Positions 12,393 through 64,000 of a DNA stretch of 64,000 bases are shown here, one piece after another. The stretch is taken from contig OZ038379.1 in assembly GCA_964036045.1 (NCBI GenBank), positions 20,150,001-20,214,000 of the forward strand, given 5' to 3'. This DNA comes from Eutreptiella sp. 'Long Island Sound 2002' (taxonomy: Eukaryota > Protista > Euglenida). Position 1 is the first letter of the stretch. Every line of letters begins with the position of its first letter. The translations under genes were made by a program, and so were the position numbers. Under the pieces are notes generated by a model, which saw only the letters and a program-made list of their open reading frames with translations, was not told where the DNA came from and searched no databases.

Positions 12393-13940
12393 CTAATTGG
12401 AATGCCCCCAAAAATCGTTTCCTGTGGGGGATGCGAGGGAAAATCTAGGCGGTTGTTCTTCCAGCAGTTGTTCGGCCTTCAGTTCTTCAAGGCGCTCAAA
12501 GTATGCAGAGACAGTCTCACGAGCGTTGTAATCATCGCAGTAATCCGGGTATTCCGGAATCTTGCCATGCTCGGTGAGTTCTATGGCCTTTTCGTAATCT
12601 CGAATGCTCGCCTTCCAGTCACGGATGATGGAGTACAGCTCCCCACGAAAAGCGTACTGGCTGGCACGATCTGCGTTTGCAGTTGTGCCTGCCATCCACT
12701 CGGACACGTAAGTGATGGCCTCGTCAACGCGACCATCGTTTACCAATGCAGATGCTTTGAACTGCACAGGTTTCAGGTCGTTGGGGTAGATCCGATGGGC
12801 TTGCTCGATGTCGTCCACGTCTACGTCGCCGAAACAGACAGCGCGGTCGCAATAAGCGTCGGATTGGACCTTCGGATCTGTTGCAGTTTCAATGATGGTG
12901 GTGTAGTCCTTGTGCGCGGCGTGGGAATCTCCCAGGTGCTCATTTACAATGGCACGGATCCTCAAAGCCAAGGGGTAGTGAGGGCAGATAAGCAACGAGG
13001 CTGTCAGATCCTCCAAGGCTTCTTCCATCTTGTTGCTGTGGTACCAACAATCAGCCCGGTTCGCCAGTGCCACAAACGCACGAGTGTAATTGAGTCGGAG
13101 GGCAGCTGCATAACAATCGATGGCCTTGGCAAATTCTCGAAGCCCTTGATAACAAAACCCGAGCTCAAAGTGAATCGTGGCATCGTTTGGCTCCAAGCGA
13201 AGGGCTTCCTCAAGGAGCTCGCTGGCATGGCGGTCATCACCGTAGGTGTACAGGATGCAAGCTTGCAACTTGAGACTCTCCACACGAGATGGTCGTTGCT
13301 GCAAGGCACGATCCATGGTGCGAATGGCACCTTCGCAGTCACTGAGGATGAGAAAGGCCTTTGCCGCCCAGTAATATGCCTTAATCATCCTCGGAAAGAC
13401 GGCGATGGCAGTCTGGAATTTGTCGAGGCTTTCCCAAGGAGAATTGGTGGTAGCCATACGGAGCAACCCTTCGTGCACATATTGCTCAGCCCTCTTCTCC
13501 GTCTCCTCCACAGCAAAGCGGGCCACTGCGGCCCAACTGCTGCACACGGTGGCAGCCTCCGAGAGGGAACGGAGAGGAACAAAGGAGAAGACGTCGCCGA
13601 ATACGTGAAATGGGAGTCCCATTATCACAGACTTTGGGTGTTCGACAACCTGGACTACCTGCGTGCCCGGTGCAGTTTTGAGAGTTTCCAAAGGTGGTGC
13701 TGGGGCTGCTGACGTCTTTAGACATTGCTGAACCACAGCTTGAAGTTGGAGCAACGACCATTCCGCCTCCAAGTCTTCATCCAAATCAACCGTACACTGG
13801 GCAACAAGGCTCTCATGTGCATGTGCACAGAAGAGCCTGTCCTCTTGCGGCATGAAGATATCAACTGTACTTGCAGTCATCACTAAAAAATATGCGAAGG
13901 TCTGTTGCATGTAAGTGGTTGCATGCAAGGTGGATTTCAT
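12393..13940 (-). CDS. Intronless F-box + tetratricopeptide-repeat (TPR) protein, 515 aa (true start may be Met21 at 13880)
   Basis: 1548-bp uninterrupted ORF. The F-box-like segment MGLPFHVFGDVFSFVPLRSLSEAATVCSSWAAVAR is at aa 107-141. It is followed by multiple TPR-like helical pairs, e.g. ATIHFELGFCYQGLREFAKAIDCYAAALRLNY and YAFRGELYSIIRDWKASIRDYEKAIEL. Confidence 0.88.
   Translation of the reverse strand: MKSTLHATTYMQQTFAYFLVMTASTVDIFMPQEDRLFCAHAHESLVAQCTVDLDEDLEAEWSLLQLQAVVQQCLKTSAAPAPPLETLKTAPGTQVVQVVEHPKSVIMGLPFHVFGDVFSFVPLRSLSEAATVCSSWAAVARFAVEETEKRAEQYVHEGLLRMATTNSPWESLDKFQTAIAVFPRMIKAYYWAAKAFLILSDCEGAIRTMDRALQQRPSRVESLKLQACILYTYGDDRHASELLEEALRLEPNDATIHFELGFCYQGLREFAKAIDCYAAALRLNYTRAFVALANRADCWYHSNKMEEALEDLTASLLICPHYPLALRIRAIVNEHLGDSHAAHKDYTTIIETATDPKVQSDAYCDRAVCFGDVDVDDIEQAHRIYPNDLKPVQFKASALVNDGRVDEAITYVSEWMAGTTANADRASQYAFRGELYSIIRDWKASIRDYEKAIELTEHGKIPEYPDYCDDYNARETVSAYFERLEELKAEQLLEEQPPRFSLASPTGNDFWGHSN
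13881..13896 (-). promoter_or_regulatory. Candidate 3' splice or trans-splice acceptor just upstream of Met21 of the F-box/TPR ORF
   Basis: Minus strand reads gcatattttttAG|tgATG: a T tract, then AG, then ATG two bases later. Confidence 0.35.
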
Positions 13941-14245: not shown

Positions 14246-14395
14246 GCGTCTGTAGACATCTGTACAACTGACTGGGGCCCTCACAAAAGAAAAGGACTGC
14301 AGATGTAGGAACAGCAGTCCAAGTGTAACAGTTTGCATCTCTCTTTTCCCCACCCCACCCTGTGCACAGAACCTTCATTCCTTCGGAACATCAGT
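14246..14395 (+). repeat. 150-bp terminal direct repeat (3' copy of the YR element)
   Basis: gcgtctgtagacatctgtacaactgactgg...ggaacatcagt; about 10 mismatches versus 19297-19446, no indels. Confidence 0.92.
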
Positions 14396-15059
14396 TCCGT
14401 CGGCCGGGGCGGGCAAAAAGGAGCTCAAGAGTGCACAGGCAGGCAACAACGTTGTATAGGTATGGAATTGCTGCTGGAGTGACTGCAACAAGTCTGCTTC
14501 TTCGAGCAAAACTCACAAAACCGCGAGCGCATGCGAGCCAATATGGAGCGACGCGGAAAATCTACCTTGCCGCGAGAGAACCGAAGGCAGGGCAGGACAG
14601 TGCTGCGCTCATAGCAGTCGGCACCCAGCGAGCATCCGTAGCCTGCCTGTGGCCTTGGGCGGAGGGAGAGGGTGCTGCCGGCCGAGGGCCCTGACTGGCA
14701 GGCCATCATATCACCCTAACAAATTGCTGCGGCCTGCAGCTGGACAGAGCCCAACCGAGGAGGGAACGTGTGTGTGCGTGTGTAGGCCAGCGCTGCACGG
14801 CCACAGGGATCGGCGCCGCGGTCGCGTCACCCCTCCACCTAGGCCGAGGTTGGGCCCACAAGGGCCACGTGCGTATAAACACACCCCATCCCGCCCCGGC
14901 CAGCCAGAGCTTCGGAGGCGGCGGTCCCCCGGGCTGTCCCCCGCTGCCGTCGCGCAACGGACCTTGCGCAACAGTCATGAGCGGGCACAAGGAAAGACGC
15001 TGGGGAGCGGTGCAGATGTGTAAAGCGCGTCAAAAGGCGCCTGTGAGTTCCCCGAAGCG

Positions 15060-15430
15060 GAGCGCCGTCGCTCGGCCTCGGCTGTGGCGTCACTCCATGA
15101 CGCCCCGCGAAAACATCTACTCAAGGGGTCCACGGGATTACAAGCGGACGGCACCCGAAATGTGGACACCTGCAGATTGCTCCAGGCCTTCAACCAGAAA
15201 ATGCGGCGGAGGATACGGTGCTGTACAACTGAATCTGGCGCTGCCCACATCCTGGTAGCGTGGATGCGGGAGGCGTCGTTATCGATTCCCACGGCAATTG
15301 AGTGGAGGCGGTTCCCTGCTGCCACTTTCATCGCTGCGTAGGCAGTATAGAGCTCCGCCTACCGAAGGGAAGACACCCACTTGGGGCATCGGTATGAACA
15401 ATATATACCCGGGGCCCCCACGTCCCCTGC
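15060..15430 (-). pseudogene. RNase H domain of the YR retroelement
   Basis: One frame reads TLFSDAA..R*AELYTAYAAM..VGIDN..FRVPSACNPVDPLSR, giving the D-E-D-D catalytic layout typical of DIRS-group RNase H. It has one internal TAG at an expected Gln. Confidence 0.8.
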
Positions 15431-15682
15431 CCGGAACCCATTGCCATCCAAGGCCGCGTCGCTGAAAAGAGTAAACGTGCGCTTGCATGAGCCTGTGGCG
15501 CGGTGAAGGGTGTGCTGGAAAGCCCAACATGAGAGCCGTACCCGTAGACGTTACCAGCGCGCGTGTGAACCAGTGTGATCCCGCGCACATACTTATATGA
15601 CCTTGCGAGGAAAGGTGCCCGTCCCGCCAGCGGCCTGAGCACCCATTGTAGCCCTACGTGCCATTTGCCTGGGGCAGATCCG

Positions 15683-17428
15683 TCAGCGGCCCAGCGCGTG
15701 AACCCACAGCCGTGTGGCCGCCGTCATCATTTCCATCGTGTTGGAGATGGACCGGGTGATAGAGTTCGGTCGCTTTCCGATGAAAGTGATGTCGGTGGTG
15801 GGCTCCATTTCGGATTTGGGGCTTATGATATATCCTGCTGCTCGCAGAGCCTGCGCCGCCGCCTGAATAGCCTTTGCTGCCACCCTCTGCGAGCGCGCCG
15901 TGATCAGGACATCGTCGAGGTAGACATGCCAGGTGGCGGAGTACCCACGCAGCGCGGACGAGACAATGCCCTGTACTAGGCGTTGGCATATGACTGGAGA
16001 ATACTTCCAGCCAAATGGCAGGGTGGGAATCCGCCAGCGTTGCCGCCCCGCTCGCATGACAAATGTCCTTCTCCAACTCCGTGGTAGCCGTATGCTCCAG
16101 GAAGCATTGCTGAGATCGAGCTTGCACATCCAGAGTTTCCCCGGCACCTTTGTGGCGAAGATGTCCCGTATTTGAGTTAGCGCAGGCAGCCGCGCCTTCG
16201 GCTGAGGGCGTGGGTCCAGTGCGTTTATTGTAGTGGCATTCAGCAGGCACCTGCATTTTGAGCTGGACTTGGGACGCAGGAAGGCGGAAGCCATGGGCGG
16301 TGCTGACGTGGGCTTTACCCCTTTGGCGACCATGTGGATTGACTGGAACATGCAAAGCAGTTGCGGGGACCCCCATTTATGGCGACGCAACCCTGGCTGC
16401 GCGCGGGGCACCACGGCCCGATAGATAGCCCTCAGCCTGCGTGGTACACAACGGCGCCACAGAGACTTGGCGAAGCTCACTTTGCCCGCAGGTGCAAGCC
16501 CCGCCGCTGCTAGGGCCTGTGGAATGTGCAAGACCGAAGGTTTGCGGGGCCTGGGCGTCGGCTCGTCGTAGAGCATGCCATCGTCCACGTCGAGTCCTTC
16601 GTTGGCCAGAGCTCGCAGCACCTTTACAAATTCTGCTTGGGCTGCATCTCCGCCACGAACGTTCCCAAGAGAGTCGAAGATGTCCATGAGGGCACTTTCG
16701 ACCATGGCGCAGCGCCCCCGTCGCACTCCGCGGAGCTGAGATACCAATATGCACGCTGTGTGGGCGCATTCGTGCAGCCGCTTCCCATCAGGCCCTGCGC
16801 GGGCGCTTGTCGCCAACCGCGTCCCAGGCCTCTTCAAGCCTGTTAGGTCCTGTAGAGCGCGTCCCTCTCGCCTGTCGCGGCAGTGACTGCCCCTGCGGGA
16901 TCTCGCAGCGCAGCCAAGGCGCCTAGAACTAGAGGGTGGTGCCAGGACAGCCTGTCCAGCCGAGCTCCCGTGCCTCTGGGTCCAGCGGCGTGACGAGCGG
17001 CCCACCAGGATGGAATTCCCTGTTGCCTTGGGGTCAGGCGTAGACCCTGAGCATCTGCAGCGAGGCCTAGCTGCCCTAGAGGAGAATTGCAGGTGTGGAC
17101 GCCCCCAACATACGGAGTTTGCCGGCACCATACAGTCGCCACGCGTGCCACCGGAGGAGCACACACCCTCATCCCGGTCGACCGATGATGCTGCGCACCT
17201 AGGAGTGCAGAATTGCGCGGGTGCTGGCCTAGGCAGCCCTATCGGGGTGGTACCTGTTGTGTGCACGTAGAGCGCGGAGGAATGTCCCCCACCGCACGCC
17301 CTAGGTACTCGCCATTTCTGAGCAGTCTCCTGCGCGGCCTTTCGCACCGTTCCAGTAAAAGGAGCCGTCCCGAAAGCTGAGTGTGACCGCCTCCTATGTG
17401 CGCAGCCCCAGGCAGATGTTGATGGCAC
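15683..17428 (-). CDS. Reverse transcriptase ORF of the YR retroelement (RT core about 15700-16400; N-terminal part overlaps the YR frame)
   Basis: Motifs CRCLLNA, CKLDLSNA.WSI, LPFGWKYSP, HVYLDDVLI and GYIISPKS..P..ITFIG are DIRS/VIPER-type RT motifs. Confidence 0.9.
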   Translation of the reverse strand: MPSTSAWGCAHRRRSHSAFGTAPFTGTVRKAAQETAQKWRVPRACGGGHSSALYVHTTGTTPIGLPRPAPAQFCTPRCAASSVDRDEGVCSSGGTRGDCMVPANSVCWGRPHLQFSSRAARPRCRCSGSTPDPKATGNSILVGRSSRRWTQRHGSSAGQAVLAPPSSSRRLGCAARSRRGSHCRDRREGRALQDLTGLKRPGTRLATSARAGPDGKRLHECAHTACILVSQLRGVRRGRCAMVESALMDIFDSLGNVRGGDAAQAEFVKVLRALANEGLDVDDGMLYDEPTPRPRKPSVLHIPQALAAAGLAPAGKVSFAKSLWRRCVPRRLRAIYRAVVPRAQPGLRRHKWGSPQLLCMFQSIHMVAKGVKPTSAPPMASAFLRPKSSSKCRCLLNATTINALDPRPQPKARLPALTQIRDIFATKVPGKLWMCKLDLSNASWSIRLPRSWRRTFVMRAGRQRWRIPTLPFGWKYSPVICQRLVQGIVSSALRGYSATWHVYLDDVLITARSQRVAAKAIQAAAQALRAAGYIISPKSEMEPTTDITFIGKRPNSITRSISNTMEMMTAATRLWVHALGR

Positions 17429-17780
17429 CCACCACTACGAGCTCCCACTCTTGTGGAGATGAGCAAAGTTTGCAGAAGGCCCGGAGGGTCTCCATTGAAG
17501 CCCAAAACTTGTGCGTTGCCGCAGGCACGGCTGCATGGAACGCGGAGATCGCCTCGACGAATTTCCAGTCCATCGGGACGACCAGCCTTTCAATCCAGCC
17601 AAATTTCTCAAGCACCCGGACAGCGGACAGGAGTTTCTTCGGGCCTACCTCCGACATGGAGTTGCGCGCGAAGTTGAGCATGTGGTCTTGCAGTGAGGTT
17701 CTCGCTGACGCTCCCGGCTGCTTCTCGAGGGTGCTCGCAAATCGGTCCAGTGTTGCTGCATACCCGTGTCATGTGTCTTT
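17045..17780 (-). pseudogene. Tyrosine recombinase domain (stop-riddled)
   Basis: One frame reads HGYAATLDRF..CLGLRT*EA..LRWHAWRLYGAGKLRMLGASTPAILL*GS*ASLQMLRVYA, which contains R, HxxR, (W) and Y catalytic positions. There are six in-frame TAG codons between about 17060 and 17395. Confidence 0.75.
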
Positions 17781-18174
17781 GGAGAGTCCTCGTACTGCCG
17801 TTGCGTCGTATGTGGCGGCGTATTCCTCACTGGATGCCCGTTGGAAACGACGTATGGCCTGCACGAGAGTGATCGCGTCGGCACATCAGATGGTGACCGC
17901 CAATCTTGGATCAATGAGAGCAGCAGTGGATGCCGAAGCCCCTACTGTGTCATCTGCAGGTTGATAGCCGGGCGCAATGTCGGCGGCAGATGGCGAATCG
18001 GGGCCGGTGCTGGTGGGGGGGGGGGGGGGGGCTGTGGGCTTGGGGAGGGCCGCATTGCAGGCGCCTGTGGATGCTAGCCCTCCATGCCCCGCGTCCCATC
18101 ATCGCTTGCGGGCAAACTGCCCTTTACAACCATGAGCGCCTCCTTGCCAATACCAGTGTGGATGTCCACAAACT

Positions 18175-19294
18175 TTACATGGCGTCTTGGGTGGCCTCGA
18201 GCAGTTGATAAGATCTCCCGTGTTGCGCGGCCTGAAATGGGGTTCTCCCTTTATCCAAAGGAAGGCTGGTGCTCTTGCGGAGTTGACTCAAACGTCTTTT
18301 GGTACTCCCCGGCAGGCACAGCGGCTGGGGCCTTGGTACTGCGTGCGCGGCCGTCATCGAGGATCCCGAGGAGCTGAACGAAGAGGAGGATGACGTGTCT
18401 GTGGAGGAGCACGAGCGGCGCCCGCCACTGGCTCGCTTTCCTTTCTGCGCCCGCTTTTTGGCCATGTGGGTGTTCTCCTTGTGCTTTTCTTTGGCCTGCA
18501 GGTGTTTGTCCTTCAGCACTGCTTGTGCTCCCTCTTTAGCTTTCAAGATCGTCCCAGACGTCTTGTGCCGCATCCAACAACCCCACACCCGCCGAGTCCA
18601 TGGAGACGTCCATGCCATCTGGCCTTCTATCAATTTGCCCAGACGTATGGCCCACTTCGATGCTCCTGCTTGTTTTCTCACGGCGTGCACATGTGCTTTT
18701 GTGGGTGCGTACTTGTGCGGCAGCACTGGATTGGCCTGGTTTGTTTGTACTCCGCCCGCGAACCCGCTGCCCGCCAGCCTGTCCCCCGATGGAGATGTGA
18801 CTCTGTGAGCGAATTCACGTTGATGCTCCGAACGCTGCATGAGCTCAATGAAAGAGAAAGCGGCCTGGGCTTGTTTTGGAACCAGATCAAAGCTAGCGAC
18901 GTCGATGTCCCATCGTACAGCCAGGGCGAATAGAAATACATCCCGATAGTAGGTGAAAGATGAGTTGACGATGGGCAAGCCGAGTTCCCGGTGGAACAGC
19001 ACCGCACACCTCGTAGTATTCAGCCCCTCAGATTGCTGCCAGAACGCATATCCGCGGTCAAGCACGGCGTTGCGGCTGTCGACCAGTATGTCATTTGCAA
19101 ACTGCGGCGATGCCAGGAATTACGACCAGGCCCCGTCCAGCATGTGTCGGTCTTCGGCCATAAGCTTCTCCCTTTTTCTTCTTCCTTTTTTCGATTGTGT
19201 CGGCCTTGGGGCTGCTACGGTGGGTGATGCCGTGCACGACTGTCCACTCTCGAGTTACTGGTGTGATTCGCGGGTGACTGCTGGTGTCGGCCAT
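18175..19294 (-). pseudogene. ORF1 (gag-like position) of the YR retroelement, no recognisable domain
   Basis: The ATG at 19294 lies immediately inside the 5' repeat. One frameshift in an A-run and one TAA link it to the 296-aa ORF 18175-19065. Assigned by position only. Confidence 0.5.
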
Positions 19295-19296
19295 CA

Positions 19297-19446
19297 GCGT
19301 CTGTAGACATCTGTACAACTGACTGGTGCGCTCACAAAAGAAAAGGACCGCAGATGTAGGAACAACAGTCCAAGTGTAACAGTTTGCATCTCTCTTTCCC
19401 CCACCCCGCCATGTGCACGGAACCTTCGTTCCTTGGGAACATCAGT
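19297..19446 (+). repeat. 150-bp terminal direct repeat (5' copy of the YR element)
   Basis: Direct copy of 14246-14395. Confidence 0.92.
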
Positions 19447-20794: not shown

Positions 20795-21349
20795 GAGGAT
20801 GCTGCGAGAGGGGTAGTGGAGGGATGTATCATTAGGATGAAGCGTCAAAAATCTAAGCCTAAGATAGGGGACATGCAACAATGCACCAGGGGCAATAGCA
20901 AGCATGCACGGCGGGGCAACAAACAAAATGGCACTTCTTGGTTTAGCTTTTCTCGTTCTAATCTTGGTTTAGTCTAGGCTAGAACGCCCAGACGATGTCG
21001 TTCTAGGCGAGAACGAAACTGGGTTTTCTAGCATGTACCTAGGATCCCACTGCAGTTCGCGTAGAAGCCATTGGTAGAGGTATGTTGCCACAAGGTCAAC
21101 CCCTAGTACCGCCTAGCGAGCTTACAAATTTGGGGACAAGAGTGCATGTGCTGCCTTTGGCCGCCAAGGTGAGTCCCCTGCGAAGTGCGGGAGGTTATCC
21201 AGGCGCAAAGTCCGGGTCCGGTTGTGGGTTGGCTACCCTAAACGGTGCAATGAACCATGTCTTCACGGCGGAGTTGCCTCGGACTGCCGTTCTTCGGAAC
21301 CGGCGAAGGTCGCATTGGGCCTGTTGCATACCGGATCTGACCTTATGGT
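20795..21349 (+). repeat. 555-bp direct repeat, copy 1
   Basis: About 99% identical to 25179-25733 (offset 4384; four substitutions seen). No TG..CA ends and no TSD. Confidence 0.93.
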
Positions 21350-25178: not shown

Positions 25179-25733
25179 GAGGATGGTGCAAGAGGGGTAG
25201 TGGAGGGATGTATCATTAGGATGAAGCGTCAAAAATCTAAGCCTAAGATAGGGGACATGCAACAATGCACCAGGGGCAATAGCAAGCATGCACGGCGGGG
25301 CAACAAACAAAATGGCACTTCTTGGTTTAGCTTTTCTCGTTCTAATCTTGGTTTAGTCTAGGCTAGAACGCCCAGGCGATGTCGTTCTAGGCGAGAACGA
25401 AACTGGGTTTTCTAGCATGTACCTAGGATCCCACTGCAGTTCGCGTAGAAGCCATTGGTAGAGGTATGTTGCCACAAGGTCAACCCCTAGTACCGCCTAG
25501 CGAGCTTACAAATTTGGGGACAAGAGTGCATGTGCTGCCTTTGGCCGCCAAGGTGAGTCCCCTGCGAAGTGCGGGAGGTTATCCAGGCGCAAAGTCCGGG
25601 TCCGGTTGTGGGTTGGCTACCCTAAACGGTGCAATGAACCATGTCTTCACGGCGGAGTTGCCTCGGACTGCCGTTCTTCGGAACCGGCAAAGGTCGCATT
25701 GGGCCTGTTGCATACCGGATCTGACCTTATGGT
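25179..25733 (+). repeat. 555-bp direct repeat, copy 2
   Basis: Direct copy of 20795-21349. Confidence 0.93.
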
Positions 25734-58913: not shown

Positions 58914-61269
58914 GATTGAGCCCCAGGGAGTATATATTTTGAACTCAGGGTGTACTTTATTTGAACTCAGAGCAGATTCAGATCAATCATCATCATTCAT
59001 CATCATCATCATGCATCATGCATCATGTGTCATGTGTCATGCATCATGTGTCATGACATGCTGGCGCCGTAGCATGTGTTTTTCACATTCCAACCCAAAA
59101 CTTCACTTTCGCTCAGAACTAACACAACCACAACCCCACTCTTATGGGCTCCTAAGAAGGTTATACTATTCATTTTTCATAACTCTTTGAATTTGGATGA
59201 TCACATTTTTGACATCATGGATTGTCATGCATGTCATGCATGATCGACTCATTTTGTGAGTGATACCACACATACTACCTTCGAAGGAGTGTAAGGTCCC
59301 TAAGGGACCTCTATTTACTCTACAACCCTTTTCCATGGTTGTCCCTACTTCTACATGTATTTTAATGCCTATTTGGTGGGTCCCAAGCATGTTTCATGTA
59401 TTGGGGGATCCCAAGAGTATACCTAGGCCTAAGCCAAGCCCCAAACACAAGAGGAGAGAAGAGAGATAGATAGAGAAAAGTTTATAGTGGTTTCAGCACT
59501 GTGTTTTGCCTCTCCTGCTGCTTGCTGTTGGTGTAGGGTTTCCTGCTGCTTGTTTTTGGAGATGAAAAGCTTTTGTTTTGATGAAATCCAGTCAATCCAG
59601 GATAGCCGAAGCCAATAGTATGCAAGGAGAAGAGAATCAGGATCAAAGCATGAAGGGCTGCAGTGTAAACAGTGAAAGATGATTGGATATTCACAGAAAC
59701 TGCAACTCAGGTCAAATCGGAATGCATATTCACAAAGATAGCTCAATTGTTTTGGAAAAGAGTTGGAAAACTGCCCCATGGTCACTCTATCTCCATAGTG
59801 CCATCTCAGGAGATGTACACTCTTTGTTTTGGGTCCCATATGTGCTGAGGTGGCAGGGCATGTGGCGATGAGGTCACTGCCATGTCACATGGGATCTTCC
59901 TACTTAGCTAGGCTGACCAGGAATTGAACCCAGGACCTCTCAAAAAGAGGTGCCCAGCCCCCTAGGGTGCATACCACTAGGATAGCTAAGAATTCATGGA
60001 AAAACATAGATAAATTCATAGGCTCTACCTTGGATATGTCAGTTCTCAGTCCACTCAGGAAAAGATGATCTGCCTCACATTGAAAGGGGATTAAGGGGTC
60101 CACTCCATATCCTGATTGGGTGTTTGGTTCCATAGGTCAAAATGTGTTGTCACCAGTTTTGGTGGGACCAATACTAAGATAGAAATGCATGGATGCTCAG
60201 TGCATCTCTAATACAACTAGAGTATGCCTCAAAGCAATGGAAAAGCACTTTTTCTTACTCCCCCCTTGTGCTGTGGTGGCCACCACTGTCGCATTTTAGG
60301 AAAAAGGGAATTTTTCTTGGCCTTTCCTTGGTTTCCACATCTACTTTTAAATACCTATAGTTTCCCTCACACAGAAAAATGGGCGCTCACCATGGCTGGC
60401 GCTCTTTTGCTGCTCTGTTTGTAACATTTCCTACAGAAGACTCAGCGCTCATGGCGCTGCCGGGGCTCCTGTGGCTTGGTTGGGTTAGTTTGGGAGCATG
60501 CCAGAACATGTGCATGTGCATCCCTCCCTCCAAGATGCAGCGCGACACAAACCCAACGCAAGACACAATATACATACTCGCATGGGTTCTCGTAAACCTG
60601 CTGGCGACTTGTGACCTGTCTTAGGGCGAAGGGAGTCGTAAAAAAAAATTAAATTGCCCCTTGGTGGGGTTTTGGGTTCTGCTCAGTCTCTCCAGGCTGC
60701 TGCGTTTCGGCCAGAACACGGCCTACTCAGCGAGGCTGCGCGTGGGTATCTGCAGAGGCAGGAATGGGAGAATTATGGACGAATCCACGCAAAAACGAAG
60801 CGACGACACCAAAATACGTCGAATGACGGCCTAGAATTTTTCTGAAACAACACACCTGAGCAGAATCCAATTGTGCATCAGAAGCACATTTGTATAAAAA
60901 TTATAGTCATCTCTGAATTTTTTAAATCCAGAAATTCATACGCATAAAAAGGCGGCGCGCAGGAGCGGCTCCTAGCGAAGCGCCGGAAAATGAAGAAATA
61001 ATGGAATTATAAACGTATGTCTCACGTAGTCTTGAAAATGACGAGACACACATTGATAAATAAACATACAGATTCCACCCACACTAATAGAAGTATCGAA
61101 AATTCAAGAATTCGAAAATCAACGAAAAAGACTTCAATGAATCAGGTATAAACTACAGGTATGCTCGTCTCGTATGCCGCATACACATTGCTCGTCTCGT
61201 GTCTCCGTGAACGAGTCTTGTAGCGGCGCTAACAATGATAGGACGCGATAGAAAGATTGCAGATGATTA

Positions 61270-62246
61270 GAGGTCAGATCAGGGTGATTAGACATACACA
61301 CAAATGCATAGCAACGTTCTTCGCGTGCGCCCCTTTTCTCCTCTCACCTTGCTTCACTCTCCAGCGGTAGGTAAGGTAGGTACGCCCAGGTGGGGCCACC
61401 CCCTGGTGGAGTCCGTGATTGCGGTGAAGATGGGCAGGTTTGCCCAACGCACTTGCGCATGCTCGCGCATTCACACACGCATTAAAGGGTAGGCCACGCG
61501 AAGTGCGCACGGTAAACCTTGTTTAGGCTACCCAGGGGCTCCTCGGTACGTTCTTTAAGAGAACCTGAGGAGTCCCTTAACGCTTGCTTGCTTGACAGGG
61601 GTAGCTGATTCTTCAGCGTGTTTGCGGACAGTGTATTATAGGTCACTCTGAGAAGCGTATAATACGTGGAGAGTGGCTTGGTTCCTCCGCCGCAAACGCC
61701 CCTTCATTTGCCTTTGCTTTACAGGTGGGCAGGTAGGGTGATTGGTGCAGCAGCATACCATTTTTTTCATGCCCTGCTAAACAAGGGCGCAGATCACACA
61801 AACAAGTAACTCCCCTCTGCCTGTGGCAGAGCAGGGAGTCCGACTCCATCGACATCTGCGCCGTGCACGCAAGAGCACCTCTTCCCTCCAAGCCCTAGCA
61901 GGGTGAACGCGTTGTGGCGTCCCCTGTTAGGCCACAGTTGCTTAGCAGCGCTGTGTTCTCTTGTCATTTCACAGGAGGGTCGCTAGGACCCACGACATGT
62001 TCTTCAACAACACCAAGTAGAGTGTGCGTGTAGGAGTGGTAGTCCTGAGTGGGGGCTTGAGCCAGTTGCGCAGTGCTCGCCCACCAGGATGGTGCCACTG
62101 TAGGGTGTGTAGGACCTGTAGTGCGTGTGTCACTGTCCCACCCGTTTCCTGCAATTTTAGCAGGGTTGGTGGGCTGTGGCAGTGGTTAGGTCAGTGTTTT
62201 GGCCATTTAGCAAAACGGCGTTTTCATGCCTTCATAGCTTTTGGCC
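61270..62246 (-). repeat. Putative 3' LTR of the Gypsy element
   Basis: A purine tract AGGGAGGGG directly followed by TG on the minus strand at 62255-62245 is PPT-like. The distal end cannot be fixed because the 5' LTR is outside the window. Confidence 0.3.
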
Positions 62247-62513
62247 ACCCCTCCCTGTAGTAGACAGATAGGTAGGGAAAACAATATCTGGATTAGTACG
62301 CTGGGTATTCCCCAAAGGTTTTGCGCCAGCACAGAAATTGGGCGCATAGGGGAGGGGAGACCCGGGGCGTACCCCGTGGCATCAATAAGCCAACCCTCCA
62401 GTTTTAGCAAGCGTGCAGACTTGGGTATAATTAGGACACCACTTCTGCGGCTTGCCTTCAGGACCTTAGGAATAGCACACTCACACATACGCTTTGGCAG
62501 GTAAGGGTAAGGT

Positions 62514-64000
62514 TCAGTCCCTAGCTTTAGTCTTGGAGGCAAGCGTCTCAGCGAGCCTCAGCAACTCACCAAGGTTGTTCTGGGACAAGTAGTCAACCAG
62601 AACTGAGTTTAGGCGTCCCTCAGGTAGAACAAATGCAGAGAAGGGCTCCCAGGTGGCCTCTTCGACTCCAAACCCTTCCCAGAGGGTGAGGAAGCGCCAA
62701 CCCTGGCGATAGCGGTGGCGTAGGACAGACTTCACCAGGTAGAAGCCCTCCTTAGCCATCTCCTCGGCGTTCATGTCGGGGAGTTCACCTTCAACTTCCA
62801 TAGGGCTGGCAGCCCCTTGTAGGTCCAGAGCGGCGATTTCCTCGTCGTTCAGCTCCCACTCCTCCCCACAGAGGTCTTCAGGATCATAGTAGCGCTTCAG
62901 GTGTTGAGCAGCGCACACCAGGGTCCCCCCTAGACGGGGAGAACACCGCACAGTGATGCGGTGTCCATCCACTGATAGAATCTTGTACGGCCCGAAGTAT
63001 GGGTCATCGCTGGTAGAGCGTGGCCAGGCGGGTAGTCGACTGTGGTGCACCAGCACCCAGTCCCCCTCTTGGTAGGTGGCCGGTACTCGGTGCTTGTTCT
63101 TCTTGTTCCACTGACGCTCCCTCACTCTCTGGAGCATAGCCTTGGCCTTGTCCACCTTCGCTTGTTGCTCTTGGACCCATTCACCCACAGAAGAATGGGT
63201 GTCCTCTGGATAGGGGGCATGTAGGAACCATGCCGGGCGCCCGAGGAATAGCTCATGGGGCGAGTAGCCAGTAGCTGAACTCTCTTGGGAGTTCATCATC
63301 AAGGATATGAAGGGGAGTAGTCTCACCCAGTCTCTGGTGCGTTCAGTTTTGCACCATATCCGTACGTTGTCCTTCAGGACACGGATGTGTCGCTCACATA
63401 GGGGGTTGCTCGTGTGAGAGTAGGGAATCCCCGTAGACACCTGGACATTGAGGGATCTCAGGACCCTCTTGTACCAGCCAGTATCTGAGCGTACTCGTAC
63501 GTCCTCATCGGAGTTGATCTCCTTGGGCGCCCCATAGACACAAAACCACTCCTTGATAGTTTCCTCCCCGGTAATATGCTTGGTACATGGGAACACCCTG
63601 GTAAACCTGGTCAACCCACAGGTTACCACGAGGGCGAAGTCATAGCCCCTGAACTTCGGCATCTCCGTGTAGTCCACGTATAGAACACTGTTAGCACAGT
63701 GAGGGATGGGCAGGGTCGAGTAGAGACCTCTGTCCCTGATATCCCCAGGTTTACAGGACCGGCACGGGCACTTGTCCATGATAGGCTGGAGGGTTTTCCG
63801 CAGTTGGTCGTCAGTCCACGTAGTGTGGAACCACTGCTTGAACAGCCTCAGGGTACGGTCAGCACCCACATGACCACTGGACTCATGGGTCCACTTCAGC
63901 AGCGCTGGGACTCGGTCACTAGGCACCACGATGCGGTCCTCGTGCCAGAGGTAGCTCTTGTCCCTCTTCCACTGGTCTTGGTTGACCAGGAGGGGTTCAA
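62514..64000 (-). mobile_element. Young Ty3/Gypsy (chromovirus-like) pol: integrase + chromodomain, frame open to the window edge
   Basis: HHCC zinc finger (THESSGHVG..CPCRSC), DDE core (YVDY, NSDED, LCER), GPY/F motif (YFGPYKI) and chromodomain (FYLVKSVLRHRY..FLTLWEGFGVEEATWEP). No stops from 64000 to 62514. Confidence 0.95.

Follow-up and report, generated by a model that had tools for sequence, protein, structure and literature searches.

CAG and CTG sites in transposon copies of a euglenid accumulate C-to-T changes at the rate of CG sites, a footprint consistent with symmetric CWG methylation

The window analyzed here is a 64,000-nucleotide stretch of the ~2.28-Gb genome of the euglenid Eutreptiella sp. 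(G000:C2:20150001-20214000; features in Table 1). It contains an old retroelement whose flanking 150-bp direct repeats (14246-14395 and 19297-19446) are 93% identical and whose closest copies elsewhere in the genome share 73-82% identity with it. The stretch 16920-17400, for which a reading of the sequence alone had proposed repeat-targeted C-to-T hypermutation in the CWG context (CAG or CTG), lies inside this element. Two of its frames are recognizable by blastx against a member of a young family, L031: the reverse-transcriptase (RT) frame is 43% identical over 895 aa to the RT ORF of L031, and the broken ORF2 is 48% identical over 345 aa to the intact ORF2. An RT ORF spanning 15683-17428 (minus strand, 581 aa, RVT_1) stays open over the whole claimed region, where it overlaps ORF2. 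In the young family, the 435-aa ORF2 (L031:2638-3942) and the 880-aa RT ORF (L031:3086-5725) likewise overlap by ~860 nt in different frames, and both overlapping frames have been kept at the protein level in the old copy of the window (16878-17578). Searches of Pfam, PHROGs and PDB sequences with the intact ORF2 returned no family match, which leaves the label of tyrosine recombinase, given to this ORF in the sequence-only reading, without support from these collections and standing as an earlier reading only.

Table 1. Features of the window (positions in the 64,000-nt stretch).
Feature	Position	Strand	Remarks
Old retroelement, ~5.2 kb	14246-19446	-	flanked by 150-bp direct repeats
Reverse-transcriptase frame of the old retroelement	14990-17578	-	homologous to the RT ORF of young-family L031
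Broken ORF2 of the old retroelement	16878-17912	-	homologous to the intact 435-aa ORF L031:2638-3942
Cluster of 7 CTAG	16921-17310		starts 16923, 16929, 17067, 17076, 17199, 17229, 17301
555-bp direct repeat, first copy	20795-21349	+	contains the 7-CTAG cluster 20974-21118
555-bp direct repeat, second copy	25179-25733	+	99.3% identical; 7 CTAG at 25358-25497
Young Ty3/gypsy-like copy	59474-63991	-	integrase + chromodomain ORF 62514-63929

All seven CTAG of the first cluster are in-frame TAG stops of the minus-strand ORF2. This frame is interrupted by 12 stops (8 TAG and 4 TGA), and alignment to the intact protein places at least four of the TAG opposite Trp and one opposite Gln. As 10 of the 12 CTGG in the intact ORF2 are in the phase nnC TGG, a G-to-A change at CTGG, that is, C-to-T at the CAG of the other strand, nearly always yields an amber stop. 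In related copies (L002-L006), sites 16923, 17067 and 17076 read CCAG, 16929 reads CTGG or CTGA, and both 17229 and 17301 read CCAA; 17199 is ambiguous. The CCAG and CTGG found in these copies at CTAG sites of the window confirm the direction of change.

Recounting CTAG returned exactly the numbers first given: seven in 16921-17310, seven in 20974-21118 and one in the 1548-bp F-box/TPR CDS (12393-13940). The second cluster, with starts at 20974, 20979, 21003, 21028, 21039, 21103 and 21113 (7 in 145 bp), is found again, equally spaced, in the second 555-bp repeat. It is thus older than the duplication and was inherited whole by both repeats, at odds with a gain after duplication. The segment 21345-22044, which begins just inside the first 555-bp repeat, is part of a ~600-bp high-copy repeat whose copies number in the dozens and share 80-88% identity; many overlapping, closely packed copies of it lie on contig C25 (~3.22 Mb). 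Local order-2 Markov simulations reached at least seven CTAG in 390 bp in 42% of cases, and the count of the first cluster is not significant against chance alone; the 145-bp cluster was matched in 1 of 500 simulations. Because so many simulations match the first cluster and the second is inherited, cluster statistics alone cannot carry the claim. Across the window, CTAG occurs 136 times against 135.6 expected from an order-2 Markov model; the observed number is 0.55 of the expectation from base composition.

The 12 stops quoted as examples in the sequence-only reading all exist as TAG, eight of them after C. Its statement that TAG makes up most of the premature stops is correct for the ORF2 of the window but not for the RT ORF of the young family (5 TAG, 7 TAA and 5 TGA), which rules it out as a general rule. 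The old element does retain plentiful CpG, as had been noted (397 CG in 5207 bp, ~0.85 of expectation). For the window as a whole, CpG stands at 0.71, CA at 1.34 and TG at 1.33 of expectation, and CWG trinucleotides at an observed/expected ratio of 1.2, without depletion. A comparison of this last ratio between unique and repeated DNA is unusable as a measure of repeat targeting, since CpG decay itself feeds CWG (CGG to CAG, CCG to CTG).

Substitution spectra were obtained from family A, a young 5.0-kb retroelement family with 30 copies (L031-L060) that are ~98% identical. A change was scored when a single copy carried it (n = 752), the column majority setting polarity. Private C-to-T changes per 1000 site-copies amounted to 5.6 at CG, 6.3 at CAG and 6.4 at CTG, versus 3.2 at CCG and 2.1 at CHH, and the excess of CWG over CHH corresponded to an odds ratio of 3.07 (p = 7e-14). 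CAA, CAC and CAT scored 1.2, 1.9 and 1.1 per 1000, respectively (CAH 1.5), against ~6.3 for CAG, which makes the G at +2 decisive. All four combinations of strand and context (CAG or CTG on either strand) were raised, at 5.2-8.1 per 1000. Variants common to at least two copies followed the same contexts, with 53 per 1000 sites at CG, 63 at CWG, 18 at CCG and 22 at CHH, and T-to-C changes, scored as a control, showed no comparable context excess (1.5-2.7 per 1000). Family A copies gained 36 CTAG, 34 of them out of CTGG or CCAG. Expressed as a rate, this is 13.8 gains per 1000 CTGG/CCAG precursor-copies, as compared with 0-1.3 for the other one-step precursors. The majority state of the family contains 5 CTAG where 17 would be expected from composition, so the motif was not a feature of the master copies that their descendants simply retained.

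The pattern recurred outside family A. In family B, an older family comprising the element of the window and four copies at 75-86% identity, C-to-T rates were 73 at CG, 82 at CAG, 65 at CTG, 9 at CCG and 26 at CHH (p = 6e-5), and the lineage of the window on its own behaved in the same manner (p = 0.02). Ten further pairs of repeats, drawn from several families and scored without polarity, gave 97 at CG, 98 at CWG, 13 at CCG and 27 at CHH (p = 4e-15); among them are a recent tandem duplicate and unrelated repeats in nested positions. All of the sizeable data sets derive from the retroelement loci of one superfamily's surroundings, together with repeats nested next to them. Pooled Mantel-Haenszel odds ratios relative to CHH were 3.33 for CWG (p = 2e-35), 3.16 for CG and 0.93 for CCG. 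CG-only mutation simulated through the same pipeline yielded a CWG/CHH ratio of 0.93, not significant. Context ratios were alike at 1-2%, 5-12% and 15-25% divergence, and assembly error is therefore no explanation for them. In all three data sets the outer C of CCG changed no faster than CHH, though the inner CG is reportedly methylated by default.

The sole different element class compared was the gypsy family represented at the end of the window. Assembled contigs of public runs provided 17 usable transitions (from 40 of 329 variant rows), distributed as 6/350 at CG, 3/382 at CWG and 7/1524 at CHH, a spectrum that agrees in direction and is not significant. This family is very abundant, with 11,570 first-look candidates in the genome and 36 scored copies at 95-97% identity. 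About 40% of the 31-mers sampled from the window copy also turn up in metagenome runs of several studies (estuary, sediment and urban); the search for further sources of copies found no record encoding the gypsy ORF and confirmed no relative in metagenome contigs. The plus strand of this copy displays a strong asymmetry between TAG (101) and CTA (26).

Collectively, these data establish that C-to-T change at CWG in transposon copies runs at about three times the rate of other non-CG cytosines and equals that at CG. The excess is specific to context, symmetric between strands and evenly spread over copies. The raised CWG rate in repeat copies and the origin of CTAG from CCAG or CTGG, both proposed by the sequence-only reading, are borne out by families A and B and the ten pairs; its picture of CWG as the hypermutated context must be amended in that CWG is not affected instead of CG, both decaying at equal rates. 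The CTAG cluster of the window is a local case of a process that each of the repeat families compared in this genome displays.

We also searched the genome for enzymes that could act on these sites. Matches to the C5-methyltransferase domain (PF00145) occur in at least 55 places, many of them multi-copy. Six of the matches listed are full-length in a single ORF. More than 30 multi-copy matches consist of the N-terminal half only; these sit in ORFs 313-381 aa long and are probably carried by retroelements. A few split matches at C14:495.8-497.8 kb, C18:13.915-13.916 Mb and C23:25.524 Mb resemble intron-containing host genes. Exon-by-exon searches, which are insensitive in an intron-rich genome, found the BAH domain in one place, far from every PF00145 match, and no match to DNMT1-RFD. 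The chromodomain search produced 28,654 candidates, of which 150 were scored, and retroelements swamp its signal. Co-location of BAH, RFD and Chromo domains in this insensitive genome search accordingly identified no chromomethylase-type gene.

Published work on related organisms supplies several candidate activities. E. gracilis possesses DNMT1, DNMT2, DNMT4 and DNMT5, DNMT4 being the clade of fungal RID (PMC7463849), and retroelement-borne methyltransferases sister to DNMT4 have been described in Euglena (bioRxiv 10.64898/2026.05.21.726589). Euglena DNMT1 branches within chlorophytes, and CHG methylation is treated as having arisen with CMT in streptophytes (PMC12344493). CG methylation of E. 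gracilis is reported to be near-default; the nanopore calls came from a model restricted to CG (PMC12455990) and so speak neither for nor against methylation at CWG. In the literature searched, neither non-CG methylation nor a process resembling RIP is described for Euglena.

The most plausible cause of the footprint is that transposon DNA carries symmetric 5mC at CWG, which then deaminates, a reading in which we infer the methylation, its writer enzyme and its aiming at repeats from substitution patterns, and which we consider probable. According to this model, 5mC would be set symmetrically at CWG on transposon DNA, alongside CG methylation, and would deaminate spontaneously to T at CAG and CTG on both strands. 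In the window, C-preceded Trp codons (CTGG) and one Gln codon (CCAG) of the Trp-rich ORF2 would thereby have turned into amber stops; the overlapping RT frame stayed open. Changes that are symmetric, uncoordinated and evenly spread are what would be expected if stably modified sites deaminate slowly and one by one. Moreover, the rise at CG and CWG, but not at CCG, parallels a preference intrinsic to plant chromomethylases, as ZMET2/CMT3 favor CWG over CCG (PMC9256654).

One aspect of the spectrum is not predicted by simple 5mC deamination. In family A, C-to-G changes at CWG (43/15320) exceed those at CHH (42/42906) by 2.9-fold (2.8 vs 1.0 per 1000; p = 3e-6) and are raised 1.8-fold at CG, and C-to-A changes at CWG are up 1.6-fold in family A and 4-fold in family B. 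The C-to-G excess may reflect a modified base being excised or bypassed, or else errors of base calling where sites are modified. Both transversions would also suit a hypermutability of CWG independent of 5mC, arising from another modification or lesion (for example, oxidized 5mC followed by excision) or from a repair bias, and euglenids do contain unusual bases such as base J (PMC12455990). Nonetheless, C-to-T is by far the largest excess and the C-to-G excess at CWG was not replicated in family B. The strict requirement for G at +2, the strand symmetry, the ranking of CWG above CCG and the parity of CWG with CG all match a methylation-deamination footprint (enzyme preference from PMC9256654). 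We regard the 5mC-independent explanation as unlikely.

A repeat defense resembling RIP, also entertained by the sequence-only reading, would have a RID/DNMT4-like or AID/APOBEC-like enzyme convert the C of CWG to T in duplicated DNA without stable methylation. The signal does come from repeats, the sole DNA compared, and in a recent tandem duplicate (L003/L004, G000:C5:8020626-8029268; copies ~4.8 kb apart, sharing 99% identity over 3.6 kb) CWG accounts for 6 of the 11 transitions. The DNMT4 of E. gracilis, the DNMT4-sister enzymes of Euglena retroelements and the many multi-copy PF00145 matches in this genome could provide the catalyst. RIP in Neurospora follows a CpA dinucleotide rule, and RIP and processive deaminases leave strand-coordinated bursts. 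However, family A shows no strand coordination of C-to-T changes within its copies (chi-square p = 0.90), neighboring events falling on the same or on different strands in a ratio of 157:158. Heterogeneity among copies is not significant (p = 0.10), no copy is hypermutated, and the CWG changes of each copy rise with its other changes (Spearman 0.41). CAG and CTG are equally affected on both strands, the other CA contexts lag far behind CAG, and CG is elevated to the same degree. These observations disfavor a RIP-like system, to which we assign a low probability.

The view that no biological process is involved, with the CTAG clusters due to chance or inheritance and the spectra to assembly, base-calling or alignment artefacts, is largely refuted and very improbable: it can draw on the Markov simulations of the first cluster, the inheritance of the second and possible assembly errors at modified bases among private differences at 1-2% divergence, but the ratios recur at all divergences, in variants of several copies and in the lineage of the window, and neither the CG-only simulation nor the T-to-C control has an excess comparable to that behind the pooled CWG significance.

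Returning to symmetric CWG methylation, we lean, by a modest degree, toward a host euglenid that maintains this mark on its transposons by means of a green-alga-derived DNMT1-like or a DNMT4-like enzyme, which would amount to a CHG-type silencing mark outside plants, either acquired with the plastid or of independent origin. DNMT4-like candidate writers may be retroelement-borne and linked to a chromodomain. CHG/CWG methylation is generally regarded as having originated in the plant lineage, in connection with chromomethylases. If the proposal is true, the mark traveled with host genes of the green secondary plastid or arose independently, and CG-only methylome calls in Euglena miss a context with a footprint as strong as that of CG. 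It would also explain the load of amber stops in old Euglena transposons, and estimates of transposon age in this ~2.3-Gb genome must then take CWG decay into account. A CWG footprint of the strength of the CG footprint in a euglenozoan is of interest for research on the evolution of DNA methylation.

Among known systems, bacterial Dcm resembles the activity described here in that its motif, CCWGG, includes CWG. A Dcm-type motif was rejected, as within CCWGG the inner C changes no faster than the cytosines of other CWG sites (family A, 5.8 vs 6.4 per 1000; family B, 71 vs 66). Fungal RIP, exerted by RID of the DNMT4 clade, is similar in its build-up of C-to-T changes in repeated DNA and in that DNMT4-type genes figure in the Euglena literature. 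It differs in that hypermutated copies, strand-coordinated runs and a CpA rule are missing here, CG equals CWG, and accumulation appears clock-like. Ordinary decay of methylated CpG by deamination is evident in the same copies, with C-to-T at CG ~3-fold up, and agrees with the depressed CpG and raised CA/TG (~1.3) of the window, but it accounts neither for CAG and CTG being raised to an equal degree nor for the conversion of CCAG and CTGG into CTAG. Plant CHG methylation by CMT3/ZMET2 differs in its host, the present one being a euglenozoan in which the pattern is read from substitutions and no chromomethylase gene was identified; in addition, the outer C of CCG here lacks any excess. In other respects the likeness is close: CAG and CTG are affected symmetrically, as seen through their mutational proxy, CWG is favored over CCG, and both features occur alongside CG methylation in transposon DNA. 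A combined CG and CWG deamination footprint is the pattern left by plant chromomethylases.
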